Shown piece by piece: positions 6,407 through 64,000 of a DNA stretch of 64,000 nt; the first letter of the stretch is position 1; the number at the start of each line of letters is the position of its first letter. The DNA comes from Macrostomum lignano. Its lineage: Eukaryota. Location: NCBI GenBank assembly GCA_002269645.1, contig NIVC01000697.1:1-64000 (forward strand), in the 5' to 3' direction. Both the position numbers and the translations under genes were made by a program. The notes beneath the pieces are model-generated. The model worked only from the letters and a program-made list of their open reading frames with translations, was not told the origin of the DNA and did not search any database.

Positions 6407-27660
<21,254 letters not shown>

Positions 27661-35709: not shown

Positions 35710-37133
35710 TTGACTTCATAAACAAATCGAATAGCGAGTGAGCACTGAGCATACGCAGTATGGCATTCAATACGGATAGCGAATGGCAGTTATTCACTGT
35801 GGCCAATCTAGTTGAGTAGAAATAATATTTTAATATTTTATAATAATACTGTATTTAAAGAAAATTCCCTAAAAATAAAAAGCATCATCTCGCTGGCAAG
35901 CTAAAAAGTCCGCTACTTGAAGAATACGCAGTATAACAAAGCGATTTTATAAAGCACAGACTTGATTTTTGAAAGTAGGCTAAATATTCTTTTTGTTTGT
36001 TTTTCAACAAAAAAGTGTCTTATTTCGTTTTCCTGTTTTGTTTTAGAAAAAAAACCAATCAGCTGACTGGCTTTACTCTATTGACTTCAAATTCAGTAAC
36101 TCTGATGAAATAGGTTCAGGATTCATTAAATGAAACAGAGTAGACCCGGTACCCGTAGGTGTAAGCAGTTTTAATTTAGCTAAACTTACACACTTTTTCC
36201 GTTCATAATCAATTGAATTTCTAGGATGATGAGTAAAAATTCTGTTTCTTTTGTTTTCTTTAAAAGAAAGATTTCTTTTAATCTTTTTACTTTTCGTTAG
36301 GCCTAATCTTCAGCTTGAATACCACCGCAGTATTTTAATTAAGCGTTTATTTAATGTCAAGATTGTAAGGCCAGTCAAGAGACTATGCGATTATTTTTTG
36401 GCCTAGTATAATCATAAATCGGCATGCAAATTGTATGTAAGATTTTCGAGAAACTCTTTGTGAAATTGACTTGAATTTTCTTATTTTTAAATAAACTTAT
36501 TGTTTCCATGGTCCTATGGTAGGCCTACTGGCCTAAAACAGTTCCTCTTTCGAAAGAGGAATTTCTCATTTTGAGTTGATCCTAGCCAAGAAGATTTGAA
36601 GGTGACACAGGACTTGCCAAAAAAAGTTATAAACTAACTAGCAAAAAGTTCATAACTAGAGTATAACCATGCATATTTGCCTTAGATTTATAAAACAAGA
36701 CCTAACTAAAAAAATAGACGAAATGCTTAATAGTTAGTTTAATGATTATTAATAGGCCTATATGTAATAAGTAATAAGTATAAATTCAATAGTTTATTTA
36801 ATTTATAGACAAGGATAGTTAGGGAATTATAGTTAATTATATTTCAAAGTATTAAAACTTAAAATAATTATAAGTTACTGTTTATCTAAACAATATCTAG
36901 TTAAGCTCAAAATAATAGTTTATAAATCACAGTTTTTGTAGCCTTTAAGCAAACAATTACTATATCATTAAATGATAGAACACTGATTCATTAAACACTA
37001 TGAAAGCTATCTTAAAAAATTATCTTAAAATCAATTTTATGGATTTTTTAAAGGTTATTAATATTTGCCTGCTTATAATGAAATGCTTTTCAATGCCCCC
37101 TACCGATTTTCAGTCCCCGCTAGCTGCATAGAA

Positions 37134-38527
37134 ATGACTTCGCCAGCCAGGCGTCGCCTTGTTCGCGATTTCAAGCGCCTCCAGGAGGACCCACCTGCTG
37201 GCGTATCTGGGGCCCCTAACGAGAGCAACATTCTGCATTGGAATTGCCTGATTTTCGGACCGCAGGACACGCCATTTGAGGATGGCACCTTCCAGCTGAC
37301 TATGGAGTTCAGCGACGAGTATCCCAATAAGCCGCCGCTTGTTCGCTTTGTATCGAAAATGTTTCATCCCAATGTCTACGCGGATGGCAGCATCTGTCTG
37401 GACATCCTGCAGGTTAGTATCTGGACATCCTTTACTCTTAACTCTGCCCAGTGTTCAGGCTGGGGTCTCAGCTCCACCCAGACAGCTCCGCTCCACCCAG
37501 ACAGCTCCACCGAGACAGCTCCACCCAGACAGCTCCGCTCCACCCAGACAGCTCCACCCAGACCTCAGCTCCACCCAGACCTCAGCTCCACCCAGACCTC
37601 AGCTACACCCAGACCTCAGCTACACCCAGACCTCAGCTACACCCAGACCTCAGCTCCAACCAGACCTCAGCTCCACCCAGTGATCCAGACCTCAGCTCCA
37701 CCCAGACCTCAGCTCCACCCAGACCTCAGCTCCACCCAGACCTCAGCTCCACCCAGACCTCAGCTCCACCCAGACCTCAGCTCCACCCAGACCTCAGCTC
37801 CACCCAGACCTCAGCTCCACCCAGACCTCAGCTCCACCCAGACCTCAGCTCCACCCAGACCTCAGCTCCACCCAGACAGCTCCACCCAGACCTCAGCTCC
37901 ACCCAGACCTCAGCTCCACCCAGACCTCAGCTCCACCCAGACAGCTCCACCCAGACCTCAGCTCCACCCAGACCTCAGCTCTACCCAGACCTCAGCTCCA
38001 CCCAGACCTCAGCTTCACCCAGACAGCTTCACCCAGACAGCTCCACCCAGACAGCTCCACCCAGACAGCTCCGCTCCACCCAGACAGCTCCACCCAGACC
38101 TCAGCTCCACCCAGACCTCAGCTCCACCCAGACAGCTCCACCCAGACCTCAGCTCCACCCAGACCTCAGATCCACCCAGACCTCAGCTCCACCCAGACCT
38201 CAGCTCCACCCAGACCTCAGCTCCACCCAGACCTCAGCTCCACCCAGACCTCAGCTCCACCCAGACCTCAGCTCCTCAAATGAGCCATCACACTGCGCCG
38301 ATCTGCAAATTACGTGGCATCCCTGAAAACTTGCGCAGGCCAAGTGGAGCCCCACCTATGACGTTTCCGCCGTGCTGACCTCCATCCAGTCCCTGCTGGA
38401 CGAGCCCAACCCAAACTCGCCAGCCAACAACGTGGCCGCCACTCTCTACCAGGAGAACAAGCGCGAATATGAGAAAAAGGTGCGCGCCATTGTTGAAGAG
38501 AGCTGGGAGATGGCCGAGTCCACTTGA
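37134..38527 (+). CDS. UBE2A: Ubiquitin-conjugating enzyme E2 A/B (Rad6 orthologue), 155 aa; join(37134-37412, 38339-38527)
   Basis: [38 protein letters not shown] | [43 protein letters not shown] motif and catalytic Cys present. GTTAGT/CAG intron, phase 0. Confidence 0.96.
37470..38275. repeat. Minisatellite, 18/15-bp units (CAGACCTCAGCTCCACCC)
   Basis: Fills the UBE2 intron. Confidence 0.94.
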
Positions 38528-44706: not shown

Positions 44707-45494
44707 TAATGCATCTGTAGAAAAGAGAGGCTCAAAAACTCTTCTGTAAAACATTTGTGTGCATTTTTCAAGCAATTTTTCTCGTTTGAAAACGCAGCTG
44801 CTCAATAATTTGCGCTCTAGAGGAGGAAAGCGATTAAAATAACGCCACAATTCTCTCCAGATAATTGCCCCTGGAGGAAATAGCGACTCTGTGTATCTGG
44901 TCCAACAGCTGATGCCATCGCTGCTAGCTTTGAGTTGGCGCCATGCAGGATATTCTGCCTATTTCTCATTTTTTTCGCTTTTCCATAGAAAAAAAAACAA
45001 ATTTTCGTCCGCATCCATGATGACGTCATTAGACAAGCGCGGAGTCGCAACTTAAGCCTGCCAGCCCTGCACAGGGTGCAAATACGGCCCGGGTCGCTAA
45101 TTCGCGCTCGAGTTTTCGCGGTCGCTAGGGCCTCGCGCGTGCATTGTTTCGCACTGTGATGCGTACAATAACCACCAACTCGCTGAGCCTTTCTCACTTG
45201 TGAGCAGTCAGGCTATTTTTATTGGAGTCCATCGATAATAGCCCAGCCCCCAGGGGTCGCAGCGGGAGTGCGAAGGCTCGTACCGGCGTTGGGGGGTTGC
45301 GGTTTCGCGCATTTTGCATCATTTTTTCTCAACTTGCAAACAGCTGCTGAATGAAAGCAAATTTTTTTTAGTTGGCTTTCGTTGCATTAAAGCATCAATC
45401 TTATGACTGTTCTCATCTACATTGCGGATGCTGATCCAGCATCCCTTCCTCATCACATTCTTATCCAATGAGCTAAGGTAAAATTAATCATTGT

Positions 45495-45968
45495 CTTCAT
45501 CTTCATCTACATCCCCCATCACCATCTGCATCCCCCATCTTCATCTACGGTCGTACATCCCCCATCGCCATCTACACCCCCCATCACCATCTACATCCCC
45601 CATCGCCATCTACACCCCCATTACCATCTACATCCCCCATCACCATCTACACCCCCCATCACCTTCTACATCCCCCATCCTCATCTACATCCCCCATCAC
45701 CAGCTACATCCCCCATCACCATCTACACCCCCATCACCATCTACATCCCCCATCACCATCTACACCCCCATCACCATCTACATCCCCCATCCTCATCAAC
45801 ACCCCCATCACCATCTACCCCCCATCCTCATCTACATCCCCCATCCTCATCTACATCCCCCATCCTCATCAACACCCCCATCACCATCTACACCCCCCAT
45901 CCTCATCTACATCCCCCATCCTCATCTACATCCCCCATCCTCATCTACATCCCCCATCCTCATCTCGA
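45495..45968. repeat. Degenerate C/A-rich minisatellite (~19 bp, CATCCCCCATCCTCATCTA)
   Basis: Upstream of Dlx-A. Confidence 0.85.
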
Positions 45969-46321
45969 TCTCCATTCACACAGTCATTCCCATTTTAGTC
46001 TCACATTAATCTCAAGTAAATAATCCCATTCCAATAATATGTGTTACTTCAAAAAGAAAACGGCCCAATGATATTGTAATGGAAAAGATCCATGAAATGA
46101 TTGCGCAATACTCTTATTACTTACAAAACAAATGCCCTTCCTTCTTGCTGCTTCTTGTTTACAGCATTGACAGCACAGCACTGTACACCACCAATGGCAA
46201 TTCTGCTGCTGGCATGTTGACATTAAGACACGAATTCGGCGCGTCTCTGCGCCGAAGAATGTGTTAAATTCCAGCAGGGCAGCACGGCAGGTTGGGGGTA
46301 GACAGAAAATCGGTCTCTCAG

Positions 46322-46457
46322 CCAATAGCAGCGGGCCTCGGCCTTGGCGCCCCAACCCCCCTCCCCCTAGCCCGGCTCAGCCGGTAGCCCAGCCGCCCAC
46401 CCTCCAATGGCGGATCGACGGGCCTCTGAATAAAAACTTGACAGCGGCAGATATAAG
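46322..46457 (+). promoter_or_regulatory. Candidate Dlx-A core promoter (CCAAT box 46322-46326; TATAAG 46452-46457)
   Basis: AGCCAATAG (NF-Y-like) and a TATA-like motif ~90 bp upstream of the ATG. Confidence 0.4.
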
Positions 46458-46543
46458 AGCTCAAAGCTTCTTTAGATTTAAGCTAAGCTAATCAACACAG
46501 TTTGACAAACACTAAGGAAGGACTCTGAGCTGCAAGCACGGAG

Positions 46544-46838
46544 ATGGAAACTTTGAAATCCGCGGCTGCCGCGGCCGCAGCAGCCGCCGCCGGTGGCCCA
46601 TATTCCCCGGAGCAGCCTGACGGTCCGGACTTCTCGCCACAGAGCGGCGGAGCCGGCGGCTACCCCGGCGGCCTGTCTGTCGCGGCGGCCTACTCCTCCG
46701 CACTCGGCCAGGGATTTCCGGCCGCCGCCAGGTCCGCCGCTCCCTACATCTCGGCTGCTCACGGCTTCGGTGGCGACCAGGCCGCTGCCGCCGCTTACTT
46801 CGCTGCCCACCACGGCTTCGGCGCTGCCAGGCCTGATG
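46544..46838 (+). CDS. Dlx: Dlx-A exon 1
   Basis: Ala/Gly-rich ORF; donor GTGAGT, phase 1. Confidence 0.85.
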
Positions 46839-49800
46839 GTGAGTCAAGGCCTGATACAGCTGCTGCATCCCGCCTTCATCTGTCTGAGCTGCTGCATCCC
46901 GCCTTCATCTGTCTGAGCTGCTGCATCCCGCCTTCATCTGTCTGAGCTGCTGCATCCCGCCTTCATCTGTCTGAGCTGCTGCATCCCGCCTTCATCTGTC
47001 TGAGCTGCTGCATCCCGCCTTCATCTGTCTGAGCTGCTGCATCCCGCCTTTATCTGTCTGAGCTGCTGCATCCCGCCCTCATTTGCCCTGTCTACCCCTC
47101 ATCTCCCCCTGCCTGTCCCTCATTTCCCCCTGTTTGTCCCTCATCTCCCCCTGCCTGTCCCTCATCTCCCCCTGCCTGTCCCTCATCTCCCCCTGCCTGT
47201 CCCTCATCTCCCCCTGTTTGTCCCTCATCTCCCCCTGCCTGTCCCTCATCTCCCCCTGCCTGTCCCTCATCTCCCCCTGCCTGTCCCTCATCTCCCCCTG
47301 CCTGTCCCTCATCTCCCCCTGTCTGTCCCTCATCTCCCCCTGCCTGTCCCTCATCTCCCCCTGCCTGTCCCTCATCTCCCCCTGCCTGTCCCTCATCCCC
47401 CCTGCCTGTCCCTCATCTCCCACTGCCTGTCCCTCATCTCCCACTGCCTGTCCCTCATCTCCCACTGCCTGTCCCTCATCTCCCACTGCCTGTCCCTCAT
47501 CTCCCCCTGCCTGTCCCTCATCCCCCCTGCCTGTCCCTCATCTCCCACTGCCTGTCCCTCATCTCCCCCTGCCTGTCCCTCATCTCCCACTGCCTGTCCC
47601 TCATCTCCCACTGCCTGTCCTTCATCTCCCACTGCCTGTCTCTCTACTCTCCACCAATTGCTTTACTTTTCCTTTTAGTCATCCTCTCCTCCCCTTTCTC
47701 AATCACAGCCTGGCTATTTTTACTGACTTTATCAAACAAATTCCTCTGGCTTCATTCTCTGGCTCCATTCTCACCTTTCCTACCTTTCCAACTCCTCAGC
47801 CAACTCAACCAAAGTCCGACTGTGGGAGCAAAGAGTTAGATCCCCACTGGCCTCAGAGCCCCGCCCCTGCCCGCCTTCTCAATCGGCGACCAACCCCACC
47901 AAACGAGATTGCTATCTGTAAGTCCGGCCGAGGCCCCTCGCCGTCTCAAAGATCTCAAATAAAAATCTATCTATTGTAAGAAGTCGGACCAGATAATATA
48001 GACAGACAGGCAGGCAGGACAGTCAAGATTAAAGCGAGTAGAAATTCAGAGTGATTTCATCGCATCGTGTCGTCTCTTTGGAACAGCCATCTCCCTTCGG
48101 GGGGAATCCCATTGTTTTGCCATCGCTGTCTACGACCACCTGTTGCGTGGCCGAATTTCCCAACTGACTTATAAATCAGATTACTCCAACTTTCAGGCCA
48201 CTCCGCCACAGTTCCCACTTGTTCCTGTTTCCCTCATGGTCAGGATAGTCATGTTTGTTTGTTTTAATTTTTAACGAAAATAACAACAACTCCAACTACT
48301 GCCCGCAGACTTGCCGCGCGACTCAGAGGGTGTCAGAGTTGGCGCCGGCCTCGGCAAAGGCAAGAAGATGCGCAAGCCGCGCACCATCTACTCCAGCCTC
48401 CAGCTGCAGCAGCTTAACAGGCGGTTCCAGCGCACCCAGTACCTGTCACTGCCTGAGCGGGCTGAGCTGGCAGCCAGCCTGGGGCTCACGCAGACTCAGG
48501 TGAGTGAATATTCAGTTGTGATTTGATGGGGAAATGGACTGAGATAGGGATAGACAGGGATAGGCAAGAATAGACATGGGATAGACATGGGATAGACAGG
48601 GATAGACAGGGATAGACAGGGATAGACAGGGATAGACAGGGATAGACAGGGATAGACAGGGATAGACAGGGATAGACAGGGATAGACAGGGATAGACAGG
48701 GATAGACAGGGATAGACAGGGATAGACAGGGATAGACAGGGATAGACAGGGATAGACAGGGATAGACAGGGATAGACAGGGATAGACAGGGATAGACAGG
48801 GATAGACAGGGATAGACAGGGATAGACAGGGATAGAAAGGGATAGACAGGGATAGACAGGGATAGACAGGGATAGAAAGGGATAGACACAACGTTAGCAA
48901 TGCTAGAGTAGCCTTTAAAAAGCGACATCCCCGCGAAGAGTGAAGAAGCAACAAAAAGGAAAAGAAAACTTCTCCCCTACCGATGCCAAAAACGCCCCGA
49001 GGACTCAAATAGAATTGTTTTGGATTGCGTGACGGCCCGCGAATGTCCTCTCAGCGTTCTGCGGGGCGGGCTCTTCCTCGCCACTCGTCAGCGCGCATGG
49101 TTGGTGGCGTGCGCGCCGTGACGCAACTGTTGCATCCTTGAAGTTGGGAGGAATGCATGGAGAGTTCTAGCCTATTCTCACTCTCTCCTGAGGGCGCCAT
49201 TGTGCCACTCTATTCTGCTTTATATCTCTAAAATGCTTTGAGCTATTGTCTTTATAGAGGCCTTTGACTTATCAATAATTTTTCCCTCTTAACTCAATAT
49301 TTCAGGTGAAGATTTGGTTTCAGAACAAGCGGTCCAAGTATAAGAAACTGCTGAAGCAGGGCCAGGACCCGCAGAACCTGGTTGACAGCATGAACGCCGA
49401 CGATGAGGAATTTTCTGATGACGTGAGTTCTTTGGGATTTTGATGAAGCAGAGTTTTAGTGGGTAGCAGAGCAGTCCTGAAGGATCGGGTGAGGGGTAGC
49501 GGAGCAGTCCTGAAGGATCGGGTGAGGGGTAGCGGAGCAGTCCTGAAGGATCGGGTGAGGGGTAGCGGAGCAGTCCTGAAGGATCGGGTGAGGGGTAGCG
49601 GAGCAGTCCTGGAGGATCGGGTGAGGGGTAGCGGAGCAGTCCTGAAGGATCGGGTGAGGGGTAACGGAGCAGTCCTGAAGGATCGGGTGAGGGGTAACGG
49701 AGCAGTCCTGGAGGATCGGGTGAGGGGTAGCGGATTGAATGGGGGGCAAGTGAATCGTCAGATTTTGGGATAGAAAAGAATTTCAGAATCCTTAATGAGA

Positions 49801-50468
49801 CAGCAGTCTTTTAGTTGAAAAAAAACGGATAAGAGGATTCAAACAAAGTTAAAAATTTTAATCTAGATAAAAAAACCGATTCTTTCCAGGAAATGATGAT
49901 GAAGAACGAAGCGAACAGTCCGATAAAGTCTGAAGCGATCATCCCGATGCACCAGCTTCCCCAGCATCCCCAGCTTCATCAGCATTTTCAACAGCGCCAG
50001 CAACAGCTTGACTCGGCTAACGAAGCCTGCGAAGCTGACTCCTTGGATTCGAACTCCCGACCTCCGCCTCCGCCGACAACTCACGGATCCTCCGAGGCTG
50101 AAGCCGACGCCGCTGGAAGCGGCGACTCGGGAGTTCCGGAAATTCAGAAGCCGCAGCCGCTGCCTCCGCCGCCACCGGCCCTGCTTGGTGAAGTTGGTGC
50201 ACCTGGAGGAGGCGCCAGTGGCCCCCTGATATCGCAGTTGCTCCCGCATCAGCACGCGCTCCAGCATCAGCACGCACTGCAGCAACATCATCAGCAGCAG
50301 CATTCTCAGCTGCATTCGTATAGCGGAGACTGGGAGCAATCGCATCATCTCCATGGCAACGCCTACCAGCTGCCGATGTCGCCTCATCCAGGCTACAGTT
50401 ACCACGGAAACCCGTACTGGTACAGCGGCGGCTATCAGCAGCAGGTGTACAACCATCAGGAGTGCTGA
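46544..50468 (+). CDS. Dlx: Distal-less/Dlx homeobox protein, copy A, 393 aa; join(46544-46838, 48309-48499, 49306-49422, 49890-50468)
   Basis: Homeodomain [44 protein letters not shown]|[14 protein letters not shown], with the Dlx-type intron between HD positions 44 and 45. All introns GT-AG, phases 1,0,0. Confidence 0.93.
46858..47640. repeat. Two adjacent minisatellites in Dlx-A intron 1: 29-bp GAGCTGCTGCATCCCGCCTTCATCTGTCT (46858-47077), then 21-bp CCCTCATCTCCCCCTGCCTGT (47079-47640)
   Basis: The same two units occur inverted at 58268-58830. Confidence 0.93.
48309..48499 (+). CDS. Dlx: Dlx-A exon 2 (homeodomain 1-44)
   Basis: CCCGCAG acceptor; GTGAGT donor. Confidence 0.95.
48545..48888. 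repeat. 10-bp tandem array (GATAGACAGG)
   Basis: Dlx-A intron 2. Confidence 0.95.
49306..49422 (+). CDS. Dlx: Dlx-A exon 3 (helix 3)
   Basis: TTTCAG acceptor; [19 protein letters not shown]; GTGAGT donor. Confidence 0.93.
49457..49733. repeat. Minisatellite, 33-bp unit (GGGGTAGCGGAGCAGTCCTGAAGGATCGGGTGA)
   Basis: Dlx-A intron 3. Confidence 0.93.
49890..50468 (+). CDS. Dlx: Dlx-A exon 4 (Pro/Gln/His-rich C-terminus)
   Basis: TCTTTCCAG acceptor in frame with ORF 49893-50468. Confidence 0.85.
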   Translation, partial: EMMMKNEANSPIKSEAIIPMHQLPQHPQLHQHFQQRQQQLDSANEACEADSLDSNSRPPPPPTTHGSSEAEADAAGSGDSGVPEIQKPQPLPPPPPALLGEVGAPGGGASGPLISQLLPHQHALQHQHALQQHHQQQHSQLHSYSGDWEQSHHLHGNAYQLPMSPHPGYSYHGNPYWYSGGYQQQVYNHQEC

Positions 50469-53056
50469 TCTGGACGCGCCTGAGACCGACATTCCCATTC
50501 GAGTATCTCTCAAGCCTACCGGCTTAACAACTATAAATTAGTCAATAGATTAAACTTAAGCTCGGTACAAAAATATACTTTTGTTACTAGGGCCGGTCGG
50601 TATAAATGCAGTTTGGTAGTTGCACAGCGTCCAATATATCCGTGCCCCCACTGCTCACTTGAATTGCTGCTTTTTCTCCCATTGTTTCGCTTTTGTCGGC
50701 CGTTTCAATAATATACATTTTTTCTCTGCTTTTTTCTTACACAAAATTTTCCTAATATAACTGTTGCTTGTTTGTCCGCGCTTCTGGTTTGTGCGTTGGT
50801 TTCCGCTAATATTCATTATGCTTTTAATACGCGCTCCGAAGCTCACCTTATAGCCCCCACCACCCCTACAGCACCTGTAGCAATATCTTTTGCATACTAT
50901 CTGCAATAACAGAATTTGAAATATAAAAATATGAAGAATTTATATGCAGGAATTGTGCAATCTAATATATGTTTATACAAGCTCTGTGTAGCTCAGTGCT
51001 AAAAAAACCCATATGTCTGTTCCGAACATTGAATTTAATTTTGAAAGATTTTCGCAACGTTGTTTGAGAATTGGAAATGTACTTCAAATGCCGCAGATGA
51101 TTGATAACAAAGACAACAGATACCGACTCAAATGGCCATTGCAGCGACACAAGAACAAGATGATATGTTACAAGATGAATGCCAGCTAAGACAAAGGCCA
51201 TAAATTTCAGAGGCATGTTGGTCTGGCGGTTGGCAGTCTGAATAGAAAATCCGAGTTCACGCTGTGCCCCCCCCCCCAGCCGAGCACAGGCCAGAGGCAG
51301 TTGTGTCGAGAAGCGCTGAAATTTGAGACGCCGGGCACAAACGCCGCTCCGTCATGAGCAGGAGGCCGCGGCTTGGTGCCACCCGCCACAGAACTTGCCA
51401 TGAGTTCCAAACGAATTCGAGACACAGAGAGACAGTGGAGGGTAGGGGAGGGCGGGCGGACCTCCCCCTGCTCCCCCCTGTAATTAGCGGGTACCTTCGC
51501 CCAAGCAAAGGGGGGGGGTTGCCTCCTGCCAACCCTCCCCCCTTCCCTCGGGATGGGCTCGGGGCTCAAGGTAAAAAAAAATCGCCGGGGACTCATCGCT
51601 TATGGTTTGAAAGCAACTTTTGGCCAAGCAGAACCGGCCTGCCCTGTCCTGCTCAGTCACCGAGGACCAGAATGCACAGACGGGCGCTCTGGCTGGTGTG
51701 CGGGCCTTGGTGTGTGGTGTGCGATGGTCGAGCCTTTGAATTGTGGAGGTGGGCGGATCCACCCTGGGGAAGAGGGAATAAGACTCTGGAGGCAACGAAT
51801 CCTTCCTACGGGCCTTGGAGATTAGGCCCCGCCTAGCCCTGTCCTCAGTCTCTTTCTCCAAAGCTAATTCTCCATCATCATTTTGTTGCTATGCTAAATG
51901 AACGAAAATCGCTATTATTGCATTGTGTTGTGCCTGACTGCTAGGCCAGTGCCAGGACAAGCTTTGAAAGTTTGTTTTAAACAGGTTAGTTTAATGCAAA
52001 AGCGTGTGATCGAGTCAGATTAAATCGAATAATATGGCTTGTTGGTGAAAGAGACACGCGCTGGTCAGGCCATGGAGGAGAATGGATCGCTGATTCGATG
52101 CACTCGTTGGGGGGGGGGGCTCGCTCATGCAACTCTGGGGATATGGGGGGGGCACACGACCCCTCAGGTGAGTCCTCGAGTTGAGTAGGCTGGATTCAAG
52201 CCTCAGGTGCGCATGGGGCCGTCCCCCCATCAGCCCTCAATCAGTAACGCGCAGCCTTAGCCAGAGCGGAGCGGCAGCAAAAGCAGCATAACAGCAGGGT
52301 TGCTTTCAACATTTGAGCGCCTTTGTTCCCTCGCCTCTCGCACAAAGGCTTGCAGCAACAAAAAGCAGACAGAAGAGCGACAGTTTTTGCTCAAAAAGCC
52401 TATTTTTTGCCTTTCTCTCCCTCTTCGAGCTGCTCAAACAATCGCTCTGAGGACTTGCTGATCGGGGAGCAGCTTAAGAGGGCCAATTAGCGATGAAAGT
52501 CAAAGGCCGCTCGGGAGGGGGGGGGGGCTAAGCAGGTAAAACAAGCAGGCAAATATTTCACCGTTTCTCTTGGGAAATGCAACAGTGGAATTCCTTTACC
52601 GATTCTACATAACCGGTGTACTCAATAATAAAATTGCGCTAATATTATGAAATTTTCATCACTGAAAACTTGAAAAATGAAAAACACACTGGCGCCTGAG
52701 TGACTCAGAGAGACAGGAGCTGCCCCGAAGCTGAAAGTGGAGGAAGAGTGGAAGGCGGAAGCAGAGAGCAGGATCTATCAGCCTCCCATTCGAACGAATT
52801 CACTTCCGGTGCGTGCGGAAGCGGCTTCAGCTCGAAATTTCGAATTTTGTTTGTCCAGTTACAAAAAAAACCCAGCCTCCGCTGCTTCATCCTCAACTGA
52901 GCAGCGAAAAAAATGGTTAATTTCTGCCTTCCGTGCGGAGGCGGCTGCCGCTGGAGTTTCGGGGGTTTTCCTTTATATATTTTTTATATATTTTAACTGC
53001 CCTGTGCTTAACTCGTTTTTATAAGCTATCAGATAGTATAAATTGATCGCCACAAA

Positions 53057-53487
53057 CCCTAATCCTAGCCCTAATCCTGATCCTGATCCTGATCCTAATC
53101 CTAATCCCAGTCCTAATCCTAATCTAGATCCTAATCCTAATCCTAACCTTATAATCTTAATCTTAATCCTAATCCTAATTCTAATCCTAATCCTAATCCT
53201 ATTCCTAGTCCTAGTCCTAATCCTAATCCTATTCCTAATCTTGATCCTAATCTAATCCCTAATCCTAATCTTATCCCTAATCCTAATCCTATCCCTAATC
53301 CTACTTTAACCGTGATCCTAATCATAATCCTAATCCTAACCCTGATCCTAATCCTAAGCCTAATGCTAATCCTAATCATAATCCCAATCCTAACCTTGAT
53401 CCTAATCCTAATCCTAATGCTAATCCTAATCATAATCCTAATCCTAACCCTGATCCTAACCATAACCTCGGTCCTAACCTTAATTCT
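53057..53487. repeat. Degenerate (CCTAAT)n hexamer array, telomere-repeat-like
   Basis: Mostly TCCTAA with scattered CCCTAA; lies in the Dlx intergenic spacer. Confidence 0.88.
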
Positions 53488-53810
53488 AAGAAAAACACAA
53501 AACCCTAACCGACAATGCTTTTCTGCTCTCTTTTTTCTTCCGTTTGGCCAATCAATCAGAGATCAAACGCCTCATTGAAATTTTAAAACCTCTTAATTGC
53601 TTACTCTTAGTAGAATAATTCGACTAAAAGGATTAGAAATAAATTAGTCAATCGAACTCATTTCAAATGCAAACAATGCATGAATTAGCGCGAAGAAATT
53701 CCTGGCAATCCAGCCACAGTCGATCATCGTTCATTATAGACATCGTTTCAAAAGCTCTGAGGCGTTACAACAAGTCAAGCCAACGTAGCTAGAAAACTAG
53801 ATTTGCTAAA

Positions 53811-54044
53811 CTAGTTGGTTTGAGACGGGTACTCAAACCAGTCATAGAAGGCTTGGGAACCGTTGCTCGGCTGCTGGCTCTTCTGGTGCCACGGTCGTGC
53901 ATCGAAACCCTTTGACTGCATTGTGCCGTAGGCTGAAGCTTCTTGGTGGCACCATCGGTTGAGCTGATGGCTGCTGGCGGCTGATGGAGCGGAGGCTGAT
54001 GCTGATGCTGCTCCCAGATTTTCCGCCAGTTGCTGATGTACTGG
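53811..54044 (-). CDS. Dlx: Dlx-B probable exon 4 ([23 protein letters not shown])
   Basis: 77-codon phase-0 frame after CATTTAG. An upstream CAG acceptor (exon starting at 54071) would give PPNTEVNI*. Confidence 0.6.
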   Translation of the reverse strand, partial: PVHQQLAENLGAASASASAPSAASSHQLNRWCHQEASAYGTMQSKGFDARPWHQKSQQPSNGSQAFYDWFEYPSQTN

Positions 54045-57000
54045 CTAAATGTTGACTTCCGTGTTTGGAGGCTGCGGGCGGACAGCGGGTTGAATGAAAA
54101 TTCCATGTGCTACTTTCACTTTGCCATGCATCAATAGTGTGTGATGTGCGATTTTCACTTTGCCATGCATCAATAGTGTGTGATGTGCGATTTTCACTTT
54201 GCCATGTATCAATAGTGTGTGATGTGCGATTTTCACTTTGCCATGTATCAGTAGTGTGTGATGTGCGATTTTCACTTTGCCATTTATCAATAGTGTGTGA
54301 TGTGCGATTTTCACTTTGCCATGCATCAGTAATGTGTGATGTGCGATTTTCACTTTGCCATGTATCAATAGTGTGTGATGTGCGATTTTCACTTTGCCAT
54401 GTATCAGTAGTGTGTGATGTGCGATTTTCACTTTGCCATTTATCAATAGTGTGTGATGTGCGATTTTCACTTTGCCATGCATCAGTAATGTGTGATGTGC
54501 GATTTTCACTTTGCCATGTATCAATAGTGTGTGATGTGCGATTTTCACTTTGCCATGTATCAGTAGTGTGTGATGTGCGATTTTCACTTTGCCATTTATC
54601 AATAGTGTGTGATGTGCGATTTTCACTTTGCCATGCATCAATAGTGTGTGATGTGCGATTTTCACTTTGCCATGCATCAATAGTGTGTGATGTGCGATTT
54701 TCACTTTGCCATGTATCAATAGTGTGTGATGTGCGATTTTCACTTTGCCATGTATCAGTAGTGTGTGATGTGCGATTTTCACTTTGCCATGCATCAATAG
54801 TGTGTGATGTGCGATTTTCACTTTGCCATGCATCAATAGTGTGTGATGTGCGATTTTCACTTTGCCATGTATCAATAGTGTGTGATGTGCGATTTTCACT
54901 TTGCCATTTATCAATAGTGTGTGATGTGCGATTTTCACTTTGCCATGTATCAGTAGTGTGTGATGTGCGATTTTCACTTTGCCATGTATCAGTAGTGTGT
55001 GATATGCGATTTTCACTTTGCCATGTATCAATAGTGTGTGATGTGCGATTTTCACTTTGCCATTTATCAATAGTGTGCGATGTGCTACTTTCACTTTGCC
55101 ATTTATCAATAGTGTGTGATGTGCGATTTTCACTTTGCCATTTATCAATAGTGTGCGATGTGCTACTTTCACTTTGCCATTTATCAATAGTGTGCGATGT
55201 GCTACTTTCACTTTGCCATTTATCAATAGTGTGCGATGTGCTACTTTCACTTTGCCATGCATCAGTAATGTGTGATGTGCGATTTTCACTTTGCCATGTA
55301 TCAATAGTGTGTGATGTGCGATCTGTCGTGTAAAGTCCAGCTCAGAATCCTTCTCAAGCCTCACCTGCTCGAACTCTGCGTCGCCTTCACCACCCAGACT
55401 CATCGAGTTGATCAGCAGATGAGGATCGTTGCCCAGCTTCACCAGCTTCTTGAATTTCGATCTTCGGTTTTGGAACCAAATTTTCACCTGATGGTTGCAG
55501 CGACTGCCATTCTTGCCATTATCTGCCATTATTCAGCTACATACTGAACAATCTGCCATTATTCAGCTACATAATGAACAATCTGCCATTATTCAGCTAC
55601 ATACTGAACAATCTGCCATTATTCAGCTACATACTGAACAATCTGCCATTATTCAACTCAGCTACATACTGAACAATCTGCCATTATTCAGCTACATACT
55701 GAACAATCTGCCATTATTCAACTCAGCTACATACTGAACAATCTGCCATTATTCAGCTACATACTGAACAATCTGCCATTATTCAACTCAGCTACATACT
55801 GAACAATCTGCCATTATTCAACTCAGCTACATACTGAACAATCTGCCATTATTCAACTCAGCTACATACTGAACAATCTGCCATTATTCACATCAGCTAC
55901 ACACTGAACAATCTGCCATTATTCAACTCAGCTACATACTGAACAATCTGCTATTATTCAACTCAGCTACACACTGAATAATCTGCCATTATTCAACTCA
56001 GCTACACACTGAACAATCTGCCATTATTCACATCAGCTACACACTGAACAATCTGCCATTATTCAACTCAGCTACATACTGAACAATCTGCCATTATTCA
56101 ACTCAGATACATACTGAACAATCTGCTATTATTCAACTCAGCTACACACTGAACAATCTGCCATTATTCAACTCAGCTACATACTGAACAATCTGCCATT
56201 ATTCAACTCAGCTACATACTGAACAATCTGCCATTATTCAACTCAGATACATACTGAACAATCTGCCATTATTCAACTCAGCTACACACTGAACAATCTG
56301 CCATTATTCAACTCAGCTACACACTGAACAATCTGCCATTATTCAACTCAGCTACATACTGAACAATCTGCCATTATTCAACTCAGCTACATACTGAACA
56401 ATCTGCCATTATTCAACTCAGATACATACTGAACAATCTGCCATTATTCAACTCAGCTACACACTGAACAATCTGCCATTATTCAACTCAGCTACACACT
56501 GAACAATCTGCCATTATTCAACTCAGCTACACACTGAACAATCTGCCATTATTCAGCTCAGCTACATACTGAACAATCTGCCATTATTCAGCTCAGCTAC
56601 ATACTGAACAATCTGCCATTATTCAACTCAGCTACATACTGAACAATCTGCCATTATTCAGCTCAGCTACATACTGAACAATCTGCCATTATTCAGCTCA
56701 GCTACATACTGAACAATCTGCCATTATTCAGCTCAGCTACATACTGAACAATCTGCCATTATTCAGCTCAGCTACATACTGAACAATCTGCTATTATTCG
56801 ATAGAAGTTTGCAACTTCCCGAGCCTGTTGCTTCTCCAGTTCGATTGCAAATTTCAAGGTTCGAACAATTTGGACAAGCAACTGATCAAACCTCCAGAAG
56901 CTGTCGCAGGGCAGAGGGTTTCGAAGCCGTTGAATAGAAAAAAGGTGGCCAGGAACTTCAAACAAAAACTGACTCACAAAAAGTCACCGCCTGCAGGCAG

Positions 57001-59105
57001 CCCCATCTGGCGCCATTCAGTTGCAGATAATTGCAGGCCTCACTGCTCCTGCCGCCACCTGAGCTGCTCCCACCTGGCTGGAGACTTTGGGCGGCGAAGG
57101 TCTCTCTCTCTCTCTCTCTCTACCTTTCTCTCTCTCTCTCTCTTTGAGAAGAAAAGTGGATCGCTGCACGAGTTTGATTTTCCTCCTGTCGAGCCTGACA
57201 GTTTGTCAGTTTTTCAAGCAGCGGCATTCGGGAAAAATGAAAGCTAAGAGAGGTCATAACAGCTGAGAGAGGTGATAACAACTAAGAGAGGTCATACACA
57301 GCTGAGAGAAGTCATACACAGCTGAAAGAGGTGATAACAACTAAGAGAGGTCATACACAGCTGAGAGAAGTCATACACAGCTGAGAGAGGTGATAACAAC
57401 TAAGAGAGGTCATACACAGCTGAGAGAAGTCATACACAGCTGAGAGAGGTGATAACAACTAAGAGAGGTCATACACAGCTGAGAGAAGTCATACACAGCT
57501 GAGAGAGGTTATAACAACTAAGAGAGGTCATACACAGCTGAGAGAAGTCATACACAGCTGAGAGAGGTTATAACAACTAAGAGAGGTCATACACAGCTGA
57601 GAGAGGTCATACACAGCAAAGAGAGGTCATACACAGCTGAGAGAGGTCATATACAGCTAAGAGAGGTCATAAAAAGCTAAGAGAGGTCATACACAGCTGA
57701 GAGAGGTCATATACAGCTAAGAGAGGTCGTACACAGCAAAGAGAGGTCATACACAGCTAAGAGAGGTGATAACAACTAAGAGAGGTCATACACAGCTAAG
57801 AGAGGTCATAAACAGCTAAGAGTGGTCATACACAGCTAAGAGAGGTCATTAACAGCTAAGAGCAGTCATAAACAGCTAAGAGCGGTCTGCTCAAATGCTA
57901 CTCACCTGAGTCTGCGTGAGCCCCAGGCTGGCTGCCAGCTCAGCCCGCTCAGGCAATGACAGGTTCTGGGTGCGCTGGAACCGCCTGTTGAGCTGCTGCA
58001 GCTGGAGGCTGGAGTAGATGGTGCGCGGCTTGCGCAATCGGCGCAGCTTCTTGTTGCCAGACGGCAGGAGCACGAGGCAGCCTGCGGCTGTGCGGCAATG
58101 GCAGGAATGTTCAGAAGCCGTATTTTGCTGAGATTTTCGGGTCAATCCAGTTTAAATGGCCATACGAGATATAGAGACTTGGTGCAGAGACAGTGCGTGA
58201 GACTGTATGAGATGGAATGGGAAGATGAGGAAGTGAAAGGGAGAACTGGGAAGCGGGTAGAAAGGGTGAGGGACAGACAGGGGGAGATGAGGGACAGACA
58301 GGGGGAGATGAGGGACAGACAGAAGAGATGAGGGACAGACAGGGGGAGATGAGGGACAGACAGGGGGAGATGAGGGACAGACAGGGGGAGATGAGGGACA
58401 GACAGGGGGAGATGAGGGACAGACAGGGGAGATGAAGGCGGGATGCAGCAGCTCAGACAGATGAAGGCGAGATGCAGCAGCTCAGACAGATGAAGGCGGG
58501 ATGCAGCAGCTCAGACAGATGAAGGCGGGATGCAGCAGCTCAGACAGATGAAGGCGAGATGCAGCAGCTCAGACAGATGAAGGCGAGATGCAGCAGCTCA
58601 GACAGATGAAGGCGGGATGCAGCAGCTCAGACAGATGAAGGCGGGATGCAGCAGCTCAGACAGATGAAGGCGGGATGCAGCAGCTCAGACAGATGAAGGC
58701 GAGATGCAGCAGCTCAGACAGATGAAGGCGAGATGCAGCAGCTCAGACAGATGAAGGCGGGATGCAGCAGCTCAGACAGATGAAGGCGGGATGCAGCAGC
58801 TCAGACAGATGAAGGCGGGATGCAGCAGCTGTATCAGGCCTTGACTCACCATCAGGCCTGGCAGCGCCGAAGCCGTGGTGGGCAGCGAAGTAAGCGGCGG
58901 CAGCGGCCTGGTCACCACCGAAGCCGTGAGCAGCCGAGATGTAGGGAGCGGCGGACCTGGCGGCGGCCGGAAATCCCTGGCCGAGTGCTGAGGAGTAGGC
59001 CGCCGCGACAGACAGGCCGCCGGGGTAGCCGCCGGCACCGCCGCTCTGTGGCGAGAAGTCCGGACCGTCAGGCTGCTCCGGGGCGAACCTGGCGGCTGTC
59101 TGCAT
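53811..59105 (-). CDS. Dlx: Distal-less/Dlx homeobox protein, copy B, ~262 aa; join(58850-59105, 57906-58081, 55365-55487, 53811-54044); last-exon acceptor uncertain (54044 vs 54071)
   Basis: Homeodomain [44 protein letters not shown]|[14 protein letters not shown]. Same four-exon layout and phases (1,0,0) as copy A. Confidence 0.85.
54107..55322. repeat. Minisatellite, 39-bp unit (TTCACTTTGCCATGYATCARTAGTGTGTGATGTGCGATT)
   Basis: Dlx-B intron 3. Confidence 0.95.
55365..55487 (-). CDS. Dlx: Dlx-B exon 3 (helix 3)
   Basis: [29 protein letters not shown]; GTGAGG donor. Confidence 0.92.
55520..56797. repeat. Minisatellite, 35/30-bp units (ACTGAACAATCTGCCATTATTCAACTCAGCTACAT)
   Basis: Dlx-B intron 2, acceptor side. 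Confidence 0.95.
57245..57885. repeat. Minisatellite, 19/20-bp units (AGCTGAGAGAGGTCATACAC)
   Basis: Dlx-B intron 2, donor side. Confidence 0.92.
57906..58081 (-). CDS. Dlx: Dlx-B exon 2 (homeodomain 1-44, with Y25N)
   Basis: CCGCAG acceptor (a second in-frame CAG lies 6 nt upstream); GTGAGT donor. Confidence 0.9.
58268..58830. repeat. Two adjacent minisatellites in Dlx-B intron 1 (21-bp at 58268-58432; 29-bp at 58433-58830), reverse complements of the Dlx-A intron 1 units
   Basis: Units GAGGGACAGACAGGGGGAGAT and AGACAGATGAAGGCGGGATGCAGCAGCTC. Confidence 0.93.
58850..59105 (-). CDS. Dlx: Dlx-B exon 1 ([17 protein letters not shown]..)
   Basis: 231/234 nt identical to Dlx-A exon 1 over 58850-59083; donor GTGAGT. 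The start codon is inferred. Confidence 0.8.
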
Positions 59106-59384
59106 CCCTGATTGTTGAAGATAACAGCGCAGTTGTTTCCGAGTGATCAATTGGCACCCGATAGGAGCTGTCAGTGCCAATTTACACCATTCGAATGCAG
59201 GCCAAAAGCCATGGGGGAGAAATGCAGCTCTCACTGGCAGCTGGATGCTATTGGCTCAGAAAGCTTCCCAAGTTTTTTACGAGAGAACGAAGACAACGCT
59301 TGGGAGAATCCTTGAATACCTCCGCATCTTGCAATAACTATTTTCATCTCAATTTATGACATGCCGGTCTCATACTCTGCTGTA

Positions 59385-59822
59385 CATCTTAGCCATCTCC
59401 AAGCTGCACTCAGCCACCCCCAAGCTGCACTCAGCCACCTCCAAGCTGCACTCAGCCACCCCCAAGCTGCACTCAGCCACCTCCAAGCTACACTCAGCAA
59501 CCTCCAAGCTACACTCAGCCACCTCCAAGCTACACTCAGCCACCTCCAAGCTACACTCAGCCACCTCCAAGCTACACTCAGCCACCTCCAAGCTACACTC
59601 AGCCACCTCCAAGCTACACTGAGCCACCTCCAAGCTACACTCAGCAACCTCCAAGCTACACTCAGCCACCTCCAAGCTACACTCAGCCACCTCCAAGCTA
59701 CACTCAGCCACCTCCAAGCTACACTGAGCCACCTCCAAGCTACACTCAGCCACCTCCAAGCTACACTCAGCCACCTCCAAGCTACACTCAGCCACCTCCC
59801 AGCTACACTCAGCCACCTTCAA
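59385..59822. repeat. Minisatellite, 21-bp unit (CACTCAGCCACCTCCAAGCTA)
   Basis: Upstream of Dlx-B. Confidence 0.93.
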
Positions 59823-60494
59823 GCTGAAGCGAATCCAACCAAGCCAATTTTCATGTTACTTGGACTCAAATGCTAAAAGCAAATAATTTTCCCTGAAAGG
59901 GGTCAAAGCAGCGAGCTGCGAGGCTTGGCATTAGATGTCATGCGGGCTTTCTGGCTGGACGAGTGGCGGGGGGGTTGCAGTGTAGGCTCCGTTCCCTCGC
60001 CCGCCTCGCTCTATTAATTACCGACTTCCTCTTCCGCGCTTGGCGGGGAGAGGGCCACCTCCTGTCCAACCCCAACCCCTCGACTTCCCTTTTGACTTTT
60101 CTCCACTGTCTTTTATTTCTGCTTCTCCTCTTGTGCATTCGGACAAGCCGCCTTCGACAAGCTACAAAGACCAAGGTTGGGTAATTATCTGATGCCAGCA
60201 GCCCTAGAAACAGCTGCAATTACCCCCCCCCCTTATCCTCCCGTTCCCCGGCCCCCAGATTTCTGTTCTGCTGCTGCCGCCCCCGGCAAATTCATAAGCT
60301 GCGCCTCATTTCCGATTCCAGCAGCAGCTATCACAAGTTTTTTATTTTAATTTAAACAACATCTTTTATGGTGGAGTTGCAATTAGCTTGTCTGCTGAAA
60401 ATTTTCACTTAGTCATTAAATTATAATTAACTCTTTTTGCCAGACAGCGAGACAGAAATTACTGCACTCAGGAGAAACGTGAAAGTGAAAAGAA

Positions 60495-61548
60495 AAGGGG
60501 AGTGAGAGTGAAGGCAACTGAGAGAGTGAAGGGGAGTGAGAGTGAAGGCAACTGAGAGAGTGAAGGGGAGTGAGAGTGAAGGCAACTGAGAGAGTGAAGG
60601 GGAATGAGAGTGAAGGGGAGTGAGAGTGAAGGGGAGTGAGAGTGAAGGCAACTGAGAGAGTGAAGGGGACTGAGAGAGTGAAGGGGAGTGAGAGTGAAGG
60701 GGAGTGAGAGTAAGGGGAATGAGAGAGTGAAGGGGATTGAGAGAGTGAAGGGGAGTGAGAGTGAAGGGGAGTGAGAGTGAAAGGGGGTGAGAGTGAAGGG
60801 GAGTGAGAGTGAAGGGGACTGAGAGAATGAAGGGGAGTGAGAGTGAAGGGGAGTGAGAGTGAAGGGGAGTGAGAGTGAAGGGGAGTGAGAGTGAAGGGGA
60901 GTGAGAGAGTGAAGGGGACTGAGAGAGTGAAGGGGAGTGAGAGTGAAGGGGAATGAGAGAGTGAAGGGGAATGAGAGAGTGAAGGGGACTGAGAGAGTGA
61001 AGGGGAGTGAGAGTGAAGGGGAGTGAGAGTGAAGGGGAATGAGAGAGTGAAGGGGACTGAGAGAGTGAAGGGGAGTGAGAGTGAAGGGGAGTGAGAGTGA
61101 AGGGGAGTGAGAGTGAAGGGGAGTGAGAGTGAAGGGGAGTGAGAGTGAAGGGGAGTGAGAGAGTGAAGGGGACTGAGAGAGTGAAGGGGAGTGAGAGTGA
61201 AGGGGAATGAGAGAGTGAAAGGGAATGAGAGAGTGAAGGGGACTGAGAGAGTGAAGGGGAGTGAGAGTGAAGGGGACTGAGAGAGTGAAGGGGACTGAGA
61301 GAGTGAAGGGGAGTGAGAGTGAAGGGGAGTGAGAGTGAAGGGGAATGAGAGAGTGAAGGGGACTGAGAGAGTGAAGGGGAGTGAGAGTGAAGGGGAGTGA
61401 GAGTGAAGGGGAGTGAGAGTGAAGGGGAGTGAGAGTGAAGGGGAGTGAGAGTGAAGGGGAGTGAGAGTGAAGGGGAGTGAGAGTGAAGGGGAGTGAGAGT
61501 GAAGGGGAGTGAGAGTGAAGGGGAGTGAGAGTGAAGGGGAGTGAGAGT
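60495..61548. repeat. Purine-rich minisatellite, 17/19-bp units (GAGTGAGAGTGAAGGGG)
   Basis: Between Dlx-B and the kinase 3' end. Confidence 0.93.
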
Positions 61549-61956
61549 TAACTTGCAGTTCCACCCAACTGGGCTGACAGTAAATTAAAGCAGAAATCCT
61601 TACAAGCTTAGATTTGATTCATTTTCAATTGAACAATATATTTATTTAGACATGTCACAATCATTTTTTCATCCCCCAAATTCGCACACAGGTAAGTAAC
61701 GGTATAATTAAGTAAATAATTATAATAAAATAGTAATTTAATCGATACGTAAATGCACTAGAATGGCTACGCAGCAGGACGAACAAGCAAAGCAAACACT
61801 GCCAGTGGGAGAGCTTTCAAGTTTCTATCAAATTCGCAAAAAATAGTTTAATCTGGTTTTTTAAGCATTTAAACAGCAATAAACAGCCACTTTATGCTAC
61901 TAAGAGTAGAAAGCAGCAGTTTTTAGCGCGGGGAGAGTCGCGCAATGAGAGGAGTC

Positions 61957-62204
61957 TCAGGTAACCCCGCCATAGAGACTAGAAGCCTTCAATTTGCTGA
62001 ACTCTTCAATCGCTGCGGCCGCCTCTGCAACAAGCTGGTCGCGCAGACTGGACTGTTCGTCTTTCAAGGCGGCTGAGTCAGTCTGCTGCTCCTGGCGTTG
62101 TGAGCCGCCGCGTGACAGCACCCAGGCGTGGCAAAGGACGTCTATGGCAGTGAGGCGGGCCGCCTTGTCCACCACTAGGAGACGGTTGATGAGATCCTTG
62201 GCGG
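61957..62204 (-). CDS. Last coding exon of a CAMK-group Ser/Thr kinase, DCLK3-like (gene continues beyond the window)
   Basis: AKDLINRLLVVDKAARLTAIDVLCHAWV is kinase subdomain XI, similar to doublecortin-like kinases. Acceptor CACCGCAG, phase 1; stop at 61957. Confidence 0.75.
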
Positions 62205-62240
62205 CTGCGGTGTGAGATTTCGAATTCAAATTTATGTAGA

Positions 62241-64000
<1,760 letters not shown>

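Follow-up and report, generated by a model that had tools for sequence, protein, structure and literature searches.

The 64,000-nt stretch analyzed here (positions 1 to 64,000 of contig NIVC01000697.1, assembly GCA_002269645.1; hereafter, the window) contains exactly two Dlx genes, Dlx-A on the plus strand and Dlx-B on the minus strand, which are transcribed towards each other (tail-to-tail). They are a real pair of Distal-less/Dlx paralogues in the flatworm Macrostomum lignano, at a real and tidy locus. Overall, we consider it probable that the pair derives from an old, lineage-specific inverted duplication of Dlx, and that the 5' halves of the two facing copies were recently homogenized by gene conversion.

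The exon models bear out the convergent arrangement proposed in an initial annotation of this DNA, with stop codons ending at 50468 (Dlx-A) and 53811 (Dlx-B) and separated by 3,342 nt. That annotation described two complete four-exon genes, which is correct for Dlx-A (46544-50468, plus strand), a clean four-exon gene with a 393-amino-acid (aa) open reading frame (ORF) and a TGA stop at 50466-50468. Dlx-B (59105-53811, minus strand) shares this exon plan, yet the assembled copy is flawed, with an in-frame TAG behind the strong acceptor of exon 4 and an asparagine in place of tyrosine at homeodomain position 25 (Y25N). All introns are GT-AG. The two genes agree in intron phase (1,0,0), as had been stated; the intron positions were said to be identical as well, but those of introns 1 and 3 agree only within 1-3 codons, on the acceptor or the donor side. 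The homeodomain of each gene is interrupted at position 44/45 (TQTQ/VKIWFQN, the slash marking the GT-AG, phase 0 intron), the typical position in Dlx genes (PMC3199776). A homeodomain scan of the whole window detected no homeobox besides those of Dlx-A and Dlx-B, the 64 kb covered being too short to exclude looser linkage to Hox genes.

The assignment to Dlx is based on the best named matches of both proteins, which are Dlx/Dll of vertebrates, arthropods, molluscs, and brachiopods (E values of 1e-27 to 1e-33), and on Pfam Homeodomain scores of 74.7 bits (Dlx-A) and 74.1 bits (Dlx-B). Judged from protein matches, the source organism is M. lignano, in agreement with the flatworm source claimed earlier. 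Four UniRef proteins, all named Macrostomum lignano (P0002, P0004, P0007, and P0122), share 95-98% identity with the Dlx-B exons, and another public protein, P0001, matches Dlx-A with 100% identity over its whole length. A chordate origin of the sequence was excluded, the best matches being these M. lignano proteins.

The termini of the two predicted proteins differ. For the N-terminal SKSAFME motif, only LKSA resembles it in Dlx-A, and the Dlx-B start (MQTAARFA) shows no resemblance; the motif is also absent from several accepted Dlx genes (PMC3199776). Candidate counterparts of the conserved tryptophan-centred motifs C-terminal to the homeodomain, judged by eye, are PYWY in Dlx-A and AFYDWFEY in Dlx-B (in the long reading of exon 4 only), as compared with YSWY at the end of other Dlx proteins. 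The start of Dlx-A exon 4 (MMKNEANSP) resembles QMKDEAVSP of an A-like public protein (P0003, UniParc UPI0007A135DF) across the exon 3/4 junction.

Comparison of the two genes revealed a mosaic. Only two segments of Dlx-A and Dlx-B align, each at ~98% identity. Of the coding sequence, the first 22-60 nt, ~60 nt at the beginning of exon 2, and all of exon 4 are unalignable, and so are the promoters, the 3' part of intron 1, introns 2 and 3, and the untranslated regions (UTRs). In the longer segment (tract 1), the A arm is 98% complementary to 58603-59083, its minisatellite arrays match those at 58264-58830, and the first 20 nt of intron 1 are identical in the two genes. The arrays of the A arm comprise 7.8 copies of a 29-mer (46858-47082) and 26.2 copies of a 21-mer (47096-47644), and those of the B arm 13.8 and 8.1 copies, respectively. 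The shorter segment (tract 2) has 97.8% identity between the two genes over 137 nt.

Silent and replacement divergence, determined as Nei-Gojobori counts, follows the same boundaries. The shared part of exon 1 has a silent divergence (dS) of 0.05 and a replacement divergence (dN) of 0, and the homeobox part of exon 2 has values of 0.06 and 0.02. For the first 30 codons of exon 3, the proportion of silent differences (pS) is 0.84 and thus saturated, with a proportion of replacement differences (pN) of 0.22; in the helix-3 part alone, silent sites are likewise saturated and pN is 0.09. The helix-3 exons differ at 13 of their first 42 nt while 12 of 14 residues are identical, exactly as had been counted before, and the alignment also agrees with the earlier statement that the last exons cannot be aligned. 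At the divergence of exon 3, the probability of no more than two silent differences at the 34 silent sites of the exon-2 homeobox would be ~1e-17. Selection alone was rejected as the cause of the homeobox identity, as silent sites and intron sequence are identical as well. A wholly recent duplication was also rejected, given the saturated silent sites of exon 3 and the unalignable other parts.

Because the two tracts are ~98% identical while exon 3 is saturated and the rest unalignable, the simplest reading of the mosaic is an old duplication in which gene conversion between the inverted copies appears to have replaced the 5' half recently. The great age assigned to the duplication by the initial annotation therefore holds for the 3' half and fails for exon 1 with ~1 kb of intron 1 and for the exon-2 homeobox; conversion was alluded to there (as "unconverted exon 3"), and the 98% identity of the 5' half was left undescribed. 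The B-specific start (MQTAARF...) and linker recur in the four other M. lignano models of Dlx-B, which indicates that Dlx-B is a stable, distinct gene and that the tract boundaries are stable rather than noise.

Whether the split is separate from other Dlx duplications can be judged from unconverted sequence only, and the 30 residues encoded by the start of exon 3 were compared across 189 Dlx proteins. The nearest relatives of Dlx-B over these residues are Dlx-A and P0003 (20/30 each). Over the 14 residues that follow the homeodomain, Dlx-A matches Dlx-B at 7 and P0003 at 6, and all 187 others match at no more than 5. Dlx-A and Dlx-B also have in common a third intron, in phase 0 and 23-25 codons past the homeodomain, and the usual annelid and vertebrate Dlx gene has three exons (PMC3199776). 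The monogenean Cichlidogyrus casuarinus, the only other flatworm locus compared, has one Dlx gene, and the 10 kb flanking it on each side contain no further copy. As the third exon of Dlx-B is closest to those of Dlx-A and P0003, the extra intron is common to both genes, and the Cichlidogyrus gene is single, we propose with moderate confidence that the duplication took place within the flatworm lineage, independently of the chordate pair. This is the origin that had been suggested initially, and it is the better reading of the data. Descent from the duplication that gave rise to the chordate Dlx2/3/5 and Dlx1/4/6 groups would place one of the two genes in each group; in these short data exon 3 of Dlx-B is closest to Dlx-A and P0003 and to no chordate group, which speaks against such descent with moderate support.

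Two further Dlx loci came to light in these comparisons. The C. casuarinus gene (GCA_045687925.1, L001:10001-11485; protein P0084, "Distal-less homeobox 6") is a single uninterrupted ORF of 494 codons in which even the otherwise universal 44/45 intron is absent, which suggests complete intron loss or a retrocopy. A Tara Oceans contig from a marine animal (ERR599314 k127_546495, L002:873-1770; also L003 and L004) carries three tandem 5' homeobox exons of Dlx type on the same strand, ~360-400 nt apart and 82-89% identical to Dlx-A. Each encodes homeodomain residues 1-45, with TQTQ at its end and then a GT donor. The 5.3-kb contig yielded no helix-3 exon, and the three look like mutually exclusive alternative homeobox exons.

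Taken together, we infer the following course of events. A single ancestral flatworm Dlx gene, which would already have gained the third intron downstream of the homeobox, underwent an inverted duplication long ago in the flatworm, probably the macrostomid, lineage. Divergence has reached saturation in the 3' halves (helix-3 exon, C-terminal exon, and UTRs) and in most introns, and helix 3 would have been under purifying selection in both copies for most of the time since. The 5' halves would then have been homogenized recently by non-reciprocal recombination, in one tract of at least 1 kb and another of 137 nt. The predicted products are homeodomain transcription factors with nearly identical N-terminal regions and helices 1-2, which differ in the linker, the helix-3 flank, and the C-terminal tail. 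The two genes may conceivably be co-regulated through shared intergenic enhancers. The coordinates of the two genes, the tracts, and other features are given in Table 1.

Table 1 The two Dlx genes, the conversion tracts, and other features of the window.
Feature	Position	Strand	Description
Dlx-A exon 1	46544..46838	+	295 nt, ends in phase 1; ATG at 46544, GTGAGT donor; 100% identical to P0001
Dlx-A exon 2	48309..48499	+	191 nt; linker and homeodomain residues 1-44; AG acceptor, GTGAGT donor; Pfam Homeodomain 74.7 bits
Dlx-A exon 3	49306..49422	+	117 nt; homeodomain residues 45-60 (helix 3) and 23 codons; unconverted
Dlx-A exon 4	49890..50468	+	579 nt; Gln/His/Pro-rich C-terminal region, aromatic PYWY end
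Dlx-B exon 1	58850..59105	-	256 nt, phase 1; all except the first 22 nt in conversion tract 1
Dlx-B exon 2	57906..58087	-	182 nt, or 176 nt from tandem acceptor 58081; B-specific linker and homeodomain residues 1-44, Y25N (codon 57965-57963)
Dlx-B exon 3	55365..55487	-	123 nt; homeodomain residues 45-60 and 25 codons; unconverted; 41/42 residues as in P0002
Dlx-B exon 4	53811..54071	-	alternative acceptors 54071 (strong) and 54044 (weak); end TAG 53813-53811, aromatic FYDWFEY motif
Putative conversion tract 1, A arm	46605..47650	+	exon 1 from codon 21, donor site, two intron-1 minisatellites
Putative conversion tract 1, B arm	58264..59083	-	exon 1, donor site, 29-mer and 21-mer minisatellites of the A arm in unchanged order
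Putative conversion tract 2, A arm	48369..48505	+	homeobox part of exon 2 and 6 nt of intron 2
Putative conversion tract 2, B arm	57900..58036	-	homeobox part of Dlx-B exon 2 and 6 nt of intron 2
Intergenic spacer	50469..53810		3,342 nt, GC 0.457; both 3' UTRs; (CCTAAT)n array 53058-53459
Last coding exon of CaMK/DCLK-like kinase gene	61960..62202	-	upstream of Dlx-B, same strand; tblastn 95% to P0002 residues 94-176; a neighbor only, outside the Dlx pair
Dynamin gene	~13955-25330	-	GTPase/middle-domain exon 24686-25330, GED exon 13955-14479
Ubiquitin-conjugating enzyme (UBE2) exon	37065-37420	+	UQ_con

What weighs against this course of events concerns the state of Dlx-B, the adjacency of the two genes, and the origin of the duplication. 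With regard to the first, the locus may hold one working Dlx gene (Dlx-A) and a dying or dead partial copy, i.e., Dlx-B would be a decaying inverted duplicate whose 98% identical 5' half is a recent patch that does not rescue it. Dlx-B exon 4 has one good acceptor only, at 54071, with a well-formed pyrimidine tract (CGCCCGCAG/CCT). From there the frame runs into a TAG (54047-54045) after 8 codons, and the stop at 53811 is reached only via the weak acceptor ATTTAG/CCA at 54044, the AG of which is supplied by that TAG. Exon 4 is colinear with that of P0002, with stretches of 12 and 8 aa replaced, apparently through compensating 1-nt indels at short homopolymers; as reconstructed from the P0002 protein alignment, five 1-nt indels and one 3-nt insertion appear to lie at its start. 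The near-invariant tyrosine at homeodomain position 25 is replaced by asparagine in this copy, the LKSA remnant of Dlx-A is missing from Dlx-B, and no relatives of Dlx-B exon 4 were found in 1.84 billion representative proteins, a result that neither supports nor refutes function. Against decay, exon 3 bears the mark of strong past purifying selection (its low helix-3 pN set against the saturated pS), and each pair of indels in exon 4 leaves the frame restored, as far as FYDWFEY, similar to the PYWY of Dlx-A. Tyr25 is retained in the four other M. lignano models of Dlx-B, and exon 4 of P0002 is open; one or more other copies thus look intact. The indels lie at homopolymers, the usual site of long-read errors, and their pattern fits assembly errors of this kind as well as early decay. 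The assembled copy, with its Y25N and early TAG, may thus be either at the onset of decay, as could well happen where polyploidy provides redundant copies, or affected by long-read indel errors. On balance we regard a dead or dying Dlx-B as unlikely, though as an explanation to be taken seriously.

The adjacency of Dlx-A and Dlx-B is known from this single assembly, and protein searches with either protein returned no near-identical transcript-derived protein; look-ups of exact products (P0002 and the exon-4 ORF of Dlx-A) likewise gave no record. The tail-to-tail layout could be an assembly artefact, due to a false join in a repeat or to a chimeric palindromic long read, with the two genes not being neighbors at all. 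Such an error would be favored by a window packed with minisatellites, including the 400-nt (CCTAAT)n array in the spacer, and M. lignano is polyploid; frameshift errors are also evident in the older assembly behind the UniProt models (P0007 and P0122). A palindromic chimeric read was rejected, however, as the arms are unalignable outside the two short tracts and all else is unique. The (CCTAAT)n array keeps a single orientation throughout, and its 400 nt are easily spanned by long reads. The order of kinase, 21-mer array, and Dlx-B is found in four independent public models, which carry the kinase and read through the array, so the side of Dlx-B facing away from Dlx-A has been reproduced independently. 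Gene conversion between the two genes is itself made more likely by proximity (PMC3199776). We therefore consider a misassembled pair improbable.

As for the origin, the pair may be ancient and share its beginnings with the annelid and/or chordate pairs, in which case a two-gene cluster of spiralian or bilaterian age would have been kept here while most other lineages lost it. Capitella, Ciona, and vertebrates all have this tail-to-tail layout, a shared origin was raised as a possibility by McDougall et al. (PMC3199776), and the saturated silent sites of exon 3 mean that dS sets no bound on the age. The argument for a lineage-specific duplication comes down to ~14 residues and one common intron, and the ancestral flatworm state was judged from a single neodermatan with an intronless Dlx gene, which is weak evidence. 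The species assignment of P0003 is likewise presumptive. This protein has a helix-3 flank identical to that of Dlx-A at 25 of 30 residues, an N-terminal motif like that of Dlx-A, and a UniParc number close to that of P0001; its composition and UniParc neighborhood point to a flatworm as the probable source, possibly M. lignano, in which case the species would have at least three Dlx types. A shared ancient origin is nevertheless very improbable in our view, since the unconverted exon of Dlx-B is closest to Dlx-A and P0003 and to no other Dlx, the fourth exon of both genes is absent from the three-exon annelid and vertebrate genes, Cichlidogyrus has a lone Dlx gene, and McDougall et al. place the annelid duplication inside annelids (PMC3199776). 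The old inverted duplication within flatworms, followed by recent conversion of the 5' halves, remains our preferred explanation.

No gene was detected between Dlx-A and Dlx-B: Rfam gave no match anywhere in the window, and Pfam gave none for the 160-aa ORF at 51354-51836. A remnant palindrome in the spacer was sought and rejected, with only pairs of G-runs and C-runs of 16-25 nt being present. The spacer contains a near-identical direct repeat of 17 nt (50533-50549, ATAAATTAGTCAATAGA; 53639-53655, ATAAATTAGTCAATCGA) with a TAATTAG core that resembles a homeodomain site. The two copies lie 65 nt past the Dlx-A stop and ~160 nt past the Dlx-B stop, on the same strand and hence in opposite orientation relative to each gene, and the repeat is slightly above chance expectation. 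Long, clean minisatellites occur in nearly every intron and spacer, both in 45494-64000 and across the window (period 6-39 nt, 8-98 copies, 85-98% matches), and they create many long spurious ORFs in several frames. Intron 3 of Dlx-B is one of them, a 39-nt minisatellite of 31 copies that is open in frame with exon 3, resulting in a 494-aa ORF (54045-55529, minus strand) that extends to the TAG at 54047-54045. Retention of this intron would add ~31 repeats of a 13-residue unit, and the ORF is probably a by-product of a period divisible by three.

At this locus, the public M. lignano models are incorrect. In four of them (P0002, P0004, P0007, and P0122), translation continues through the 21-mer array at 59383-59825 and so joins the CaMK/DCLK-like kinase to Dlx-B, and two of these fusions (P0007 and P0122) contain frameshifted stretches. 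The exon 2 acceptor of Dlx-B used in the public models is that at 58081. The Dlx-A model (P0001, 284 aa) is truncated, as most of exon 4 is spliced out. Farther from the pair, a dynamin gene and a ubiquitin-conjugating enzyme exon were identified, and to our knowledge neither is a known neighbor of vertebrate Dlx pairs.

As duplicated developmental genes that stay together tail-to-tail, supposedly because they share enhancers, Dlx pairs are a textbook example. Whether this layout is favored or accidental was a question raised by the annelid case, and a second protostome example would strengthen the argument for convergence, coming from a different phylum, with a spacer of vertebrate size (3.3 kb) and with the same restriction of conversion to the 5' homeobox half. 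It may be that M. lignano represents a third independent origin of tail-to-tail Dlx genes, after chordates and annelids, with both genes functional, and only the second case in which ongoing conversion keeps the 5' homeobox half uniform as the helix-3 and C-terminal halves diverge; we advance this tentatively, at slightly short of an even chance. If true, it would point to a recurrent bias acting on one gene family, either in structure, through inverted duplication and subsequent conversion, or in regulation, through enhancer sharing. Transgenesis is available for M. lignano, and the 3.3-kb spacer can therefore be tested directly for enhancer sharing, at a small and experimentally accessible locus in a flatworm that is also amenable to RNA interference.

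Among known systems, the closest is that of the annelid Capitella teleta, in which CtDlxa and CtDlxb lie tail-to-tail and 18.2 kb apart (McDougall et al. 2011, BMC Evol Biol 11:241; PMC3199776). The two have 100% nucleotide identity in the 5' homeobox and the adjoining intron and are divergent elsewhere, which was ascribed to gene conversion between closely linked inverted copies, and no Dlx pair other than that of Capitella was credited with gene conversion at the time. The same study already considered convergence on this layout and asked whether it is favored by shared enhancers. In both species a protostome has an adjacent inverted Dlx pair with divergent proteins and a near-identical 5' homeobox, including silent sites and non-coding sequence. 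The M. lignano pair differs in its shorter spacer (3.3 kb versus 18.2 kb), in its four rather than three exons, and in the additional tract of at least 1 kb that spans exon 1 and the intron-1 minisatellites, and its homeobox tract enters intron 2 by 6 nt only. It belongs to a different phylum and its duplication is probably separate. Since the Capitella pair was already published with both the layout and the conversion, the view of convergent Dlx pairs as a chordate hallmark, on which the initial annotation relied, is outdated; the M. lignano pair is a second protostome example, from another phylum, and its architecture is not new.

The vertebrate pairs (Dlx1/2, Dlx3/4, and Dlx5/6) are also convergent paralogues with a spacer of a few kb and the 44/45 intron. 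Unlike the M. lignano genes, they have three exons, linkage to Hox genes, diverged homeoboxes without conversion, and intergenic enhancers that were shown experimentally (PMC3199776), whereas in M. lignano the 5' half is converted by our reading, no other homeobox is present in the window, and orthology is unsupported by exon 3. Dll-A and Dll-B of Ciona intestinalis likewise form a non-vertebrate tail-to-tail pair, but this is a chordate pair that is linked to Hox12/13 and thought to derive from the same duplication as those of vertebrates (PMC3199776), and the flatworm pair appears independent of it. In flatworms, no description of a Dlx pair was found in the literature searched, the coverage of which leaves out most subscription-journal papers. 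Members of the family there, such as planarian Smed-dlx (Lapan and Reddien 2011), Hymenolepis dlx, and P0084 of C. casuarinus, are reported or annotated as single genes, and they have in common with Dlx-A the flatworm-type KQGQDP flank after the homeodomain.

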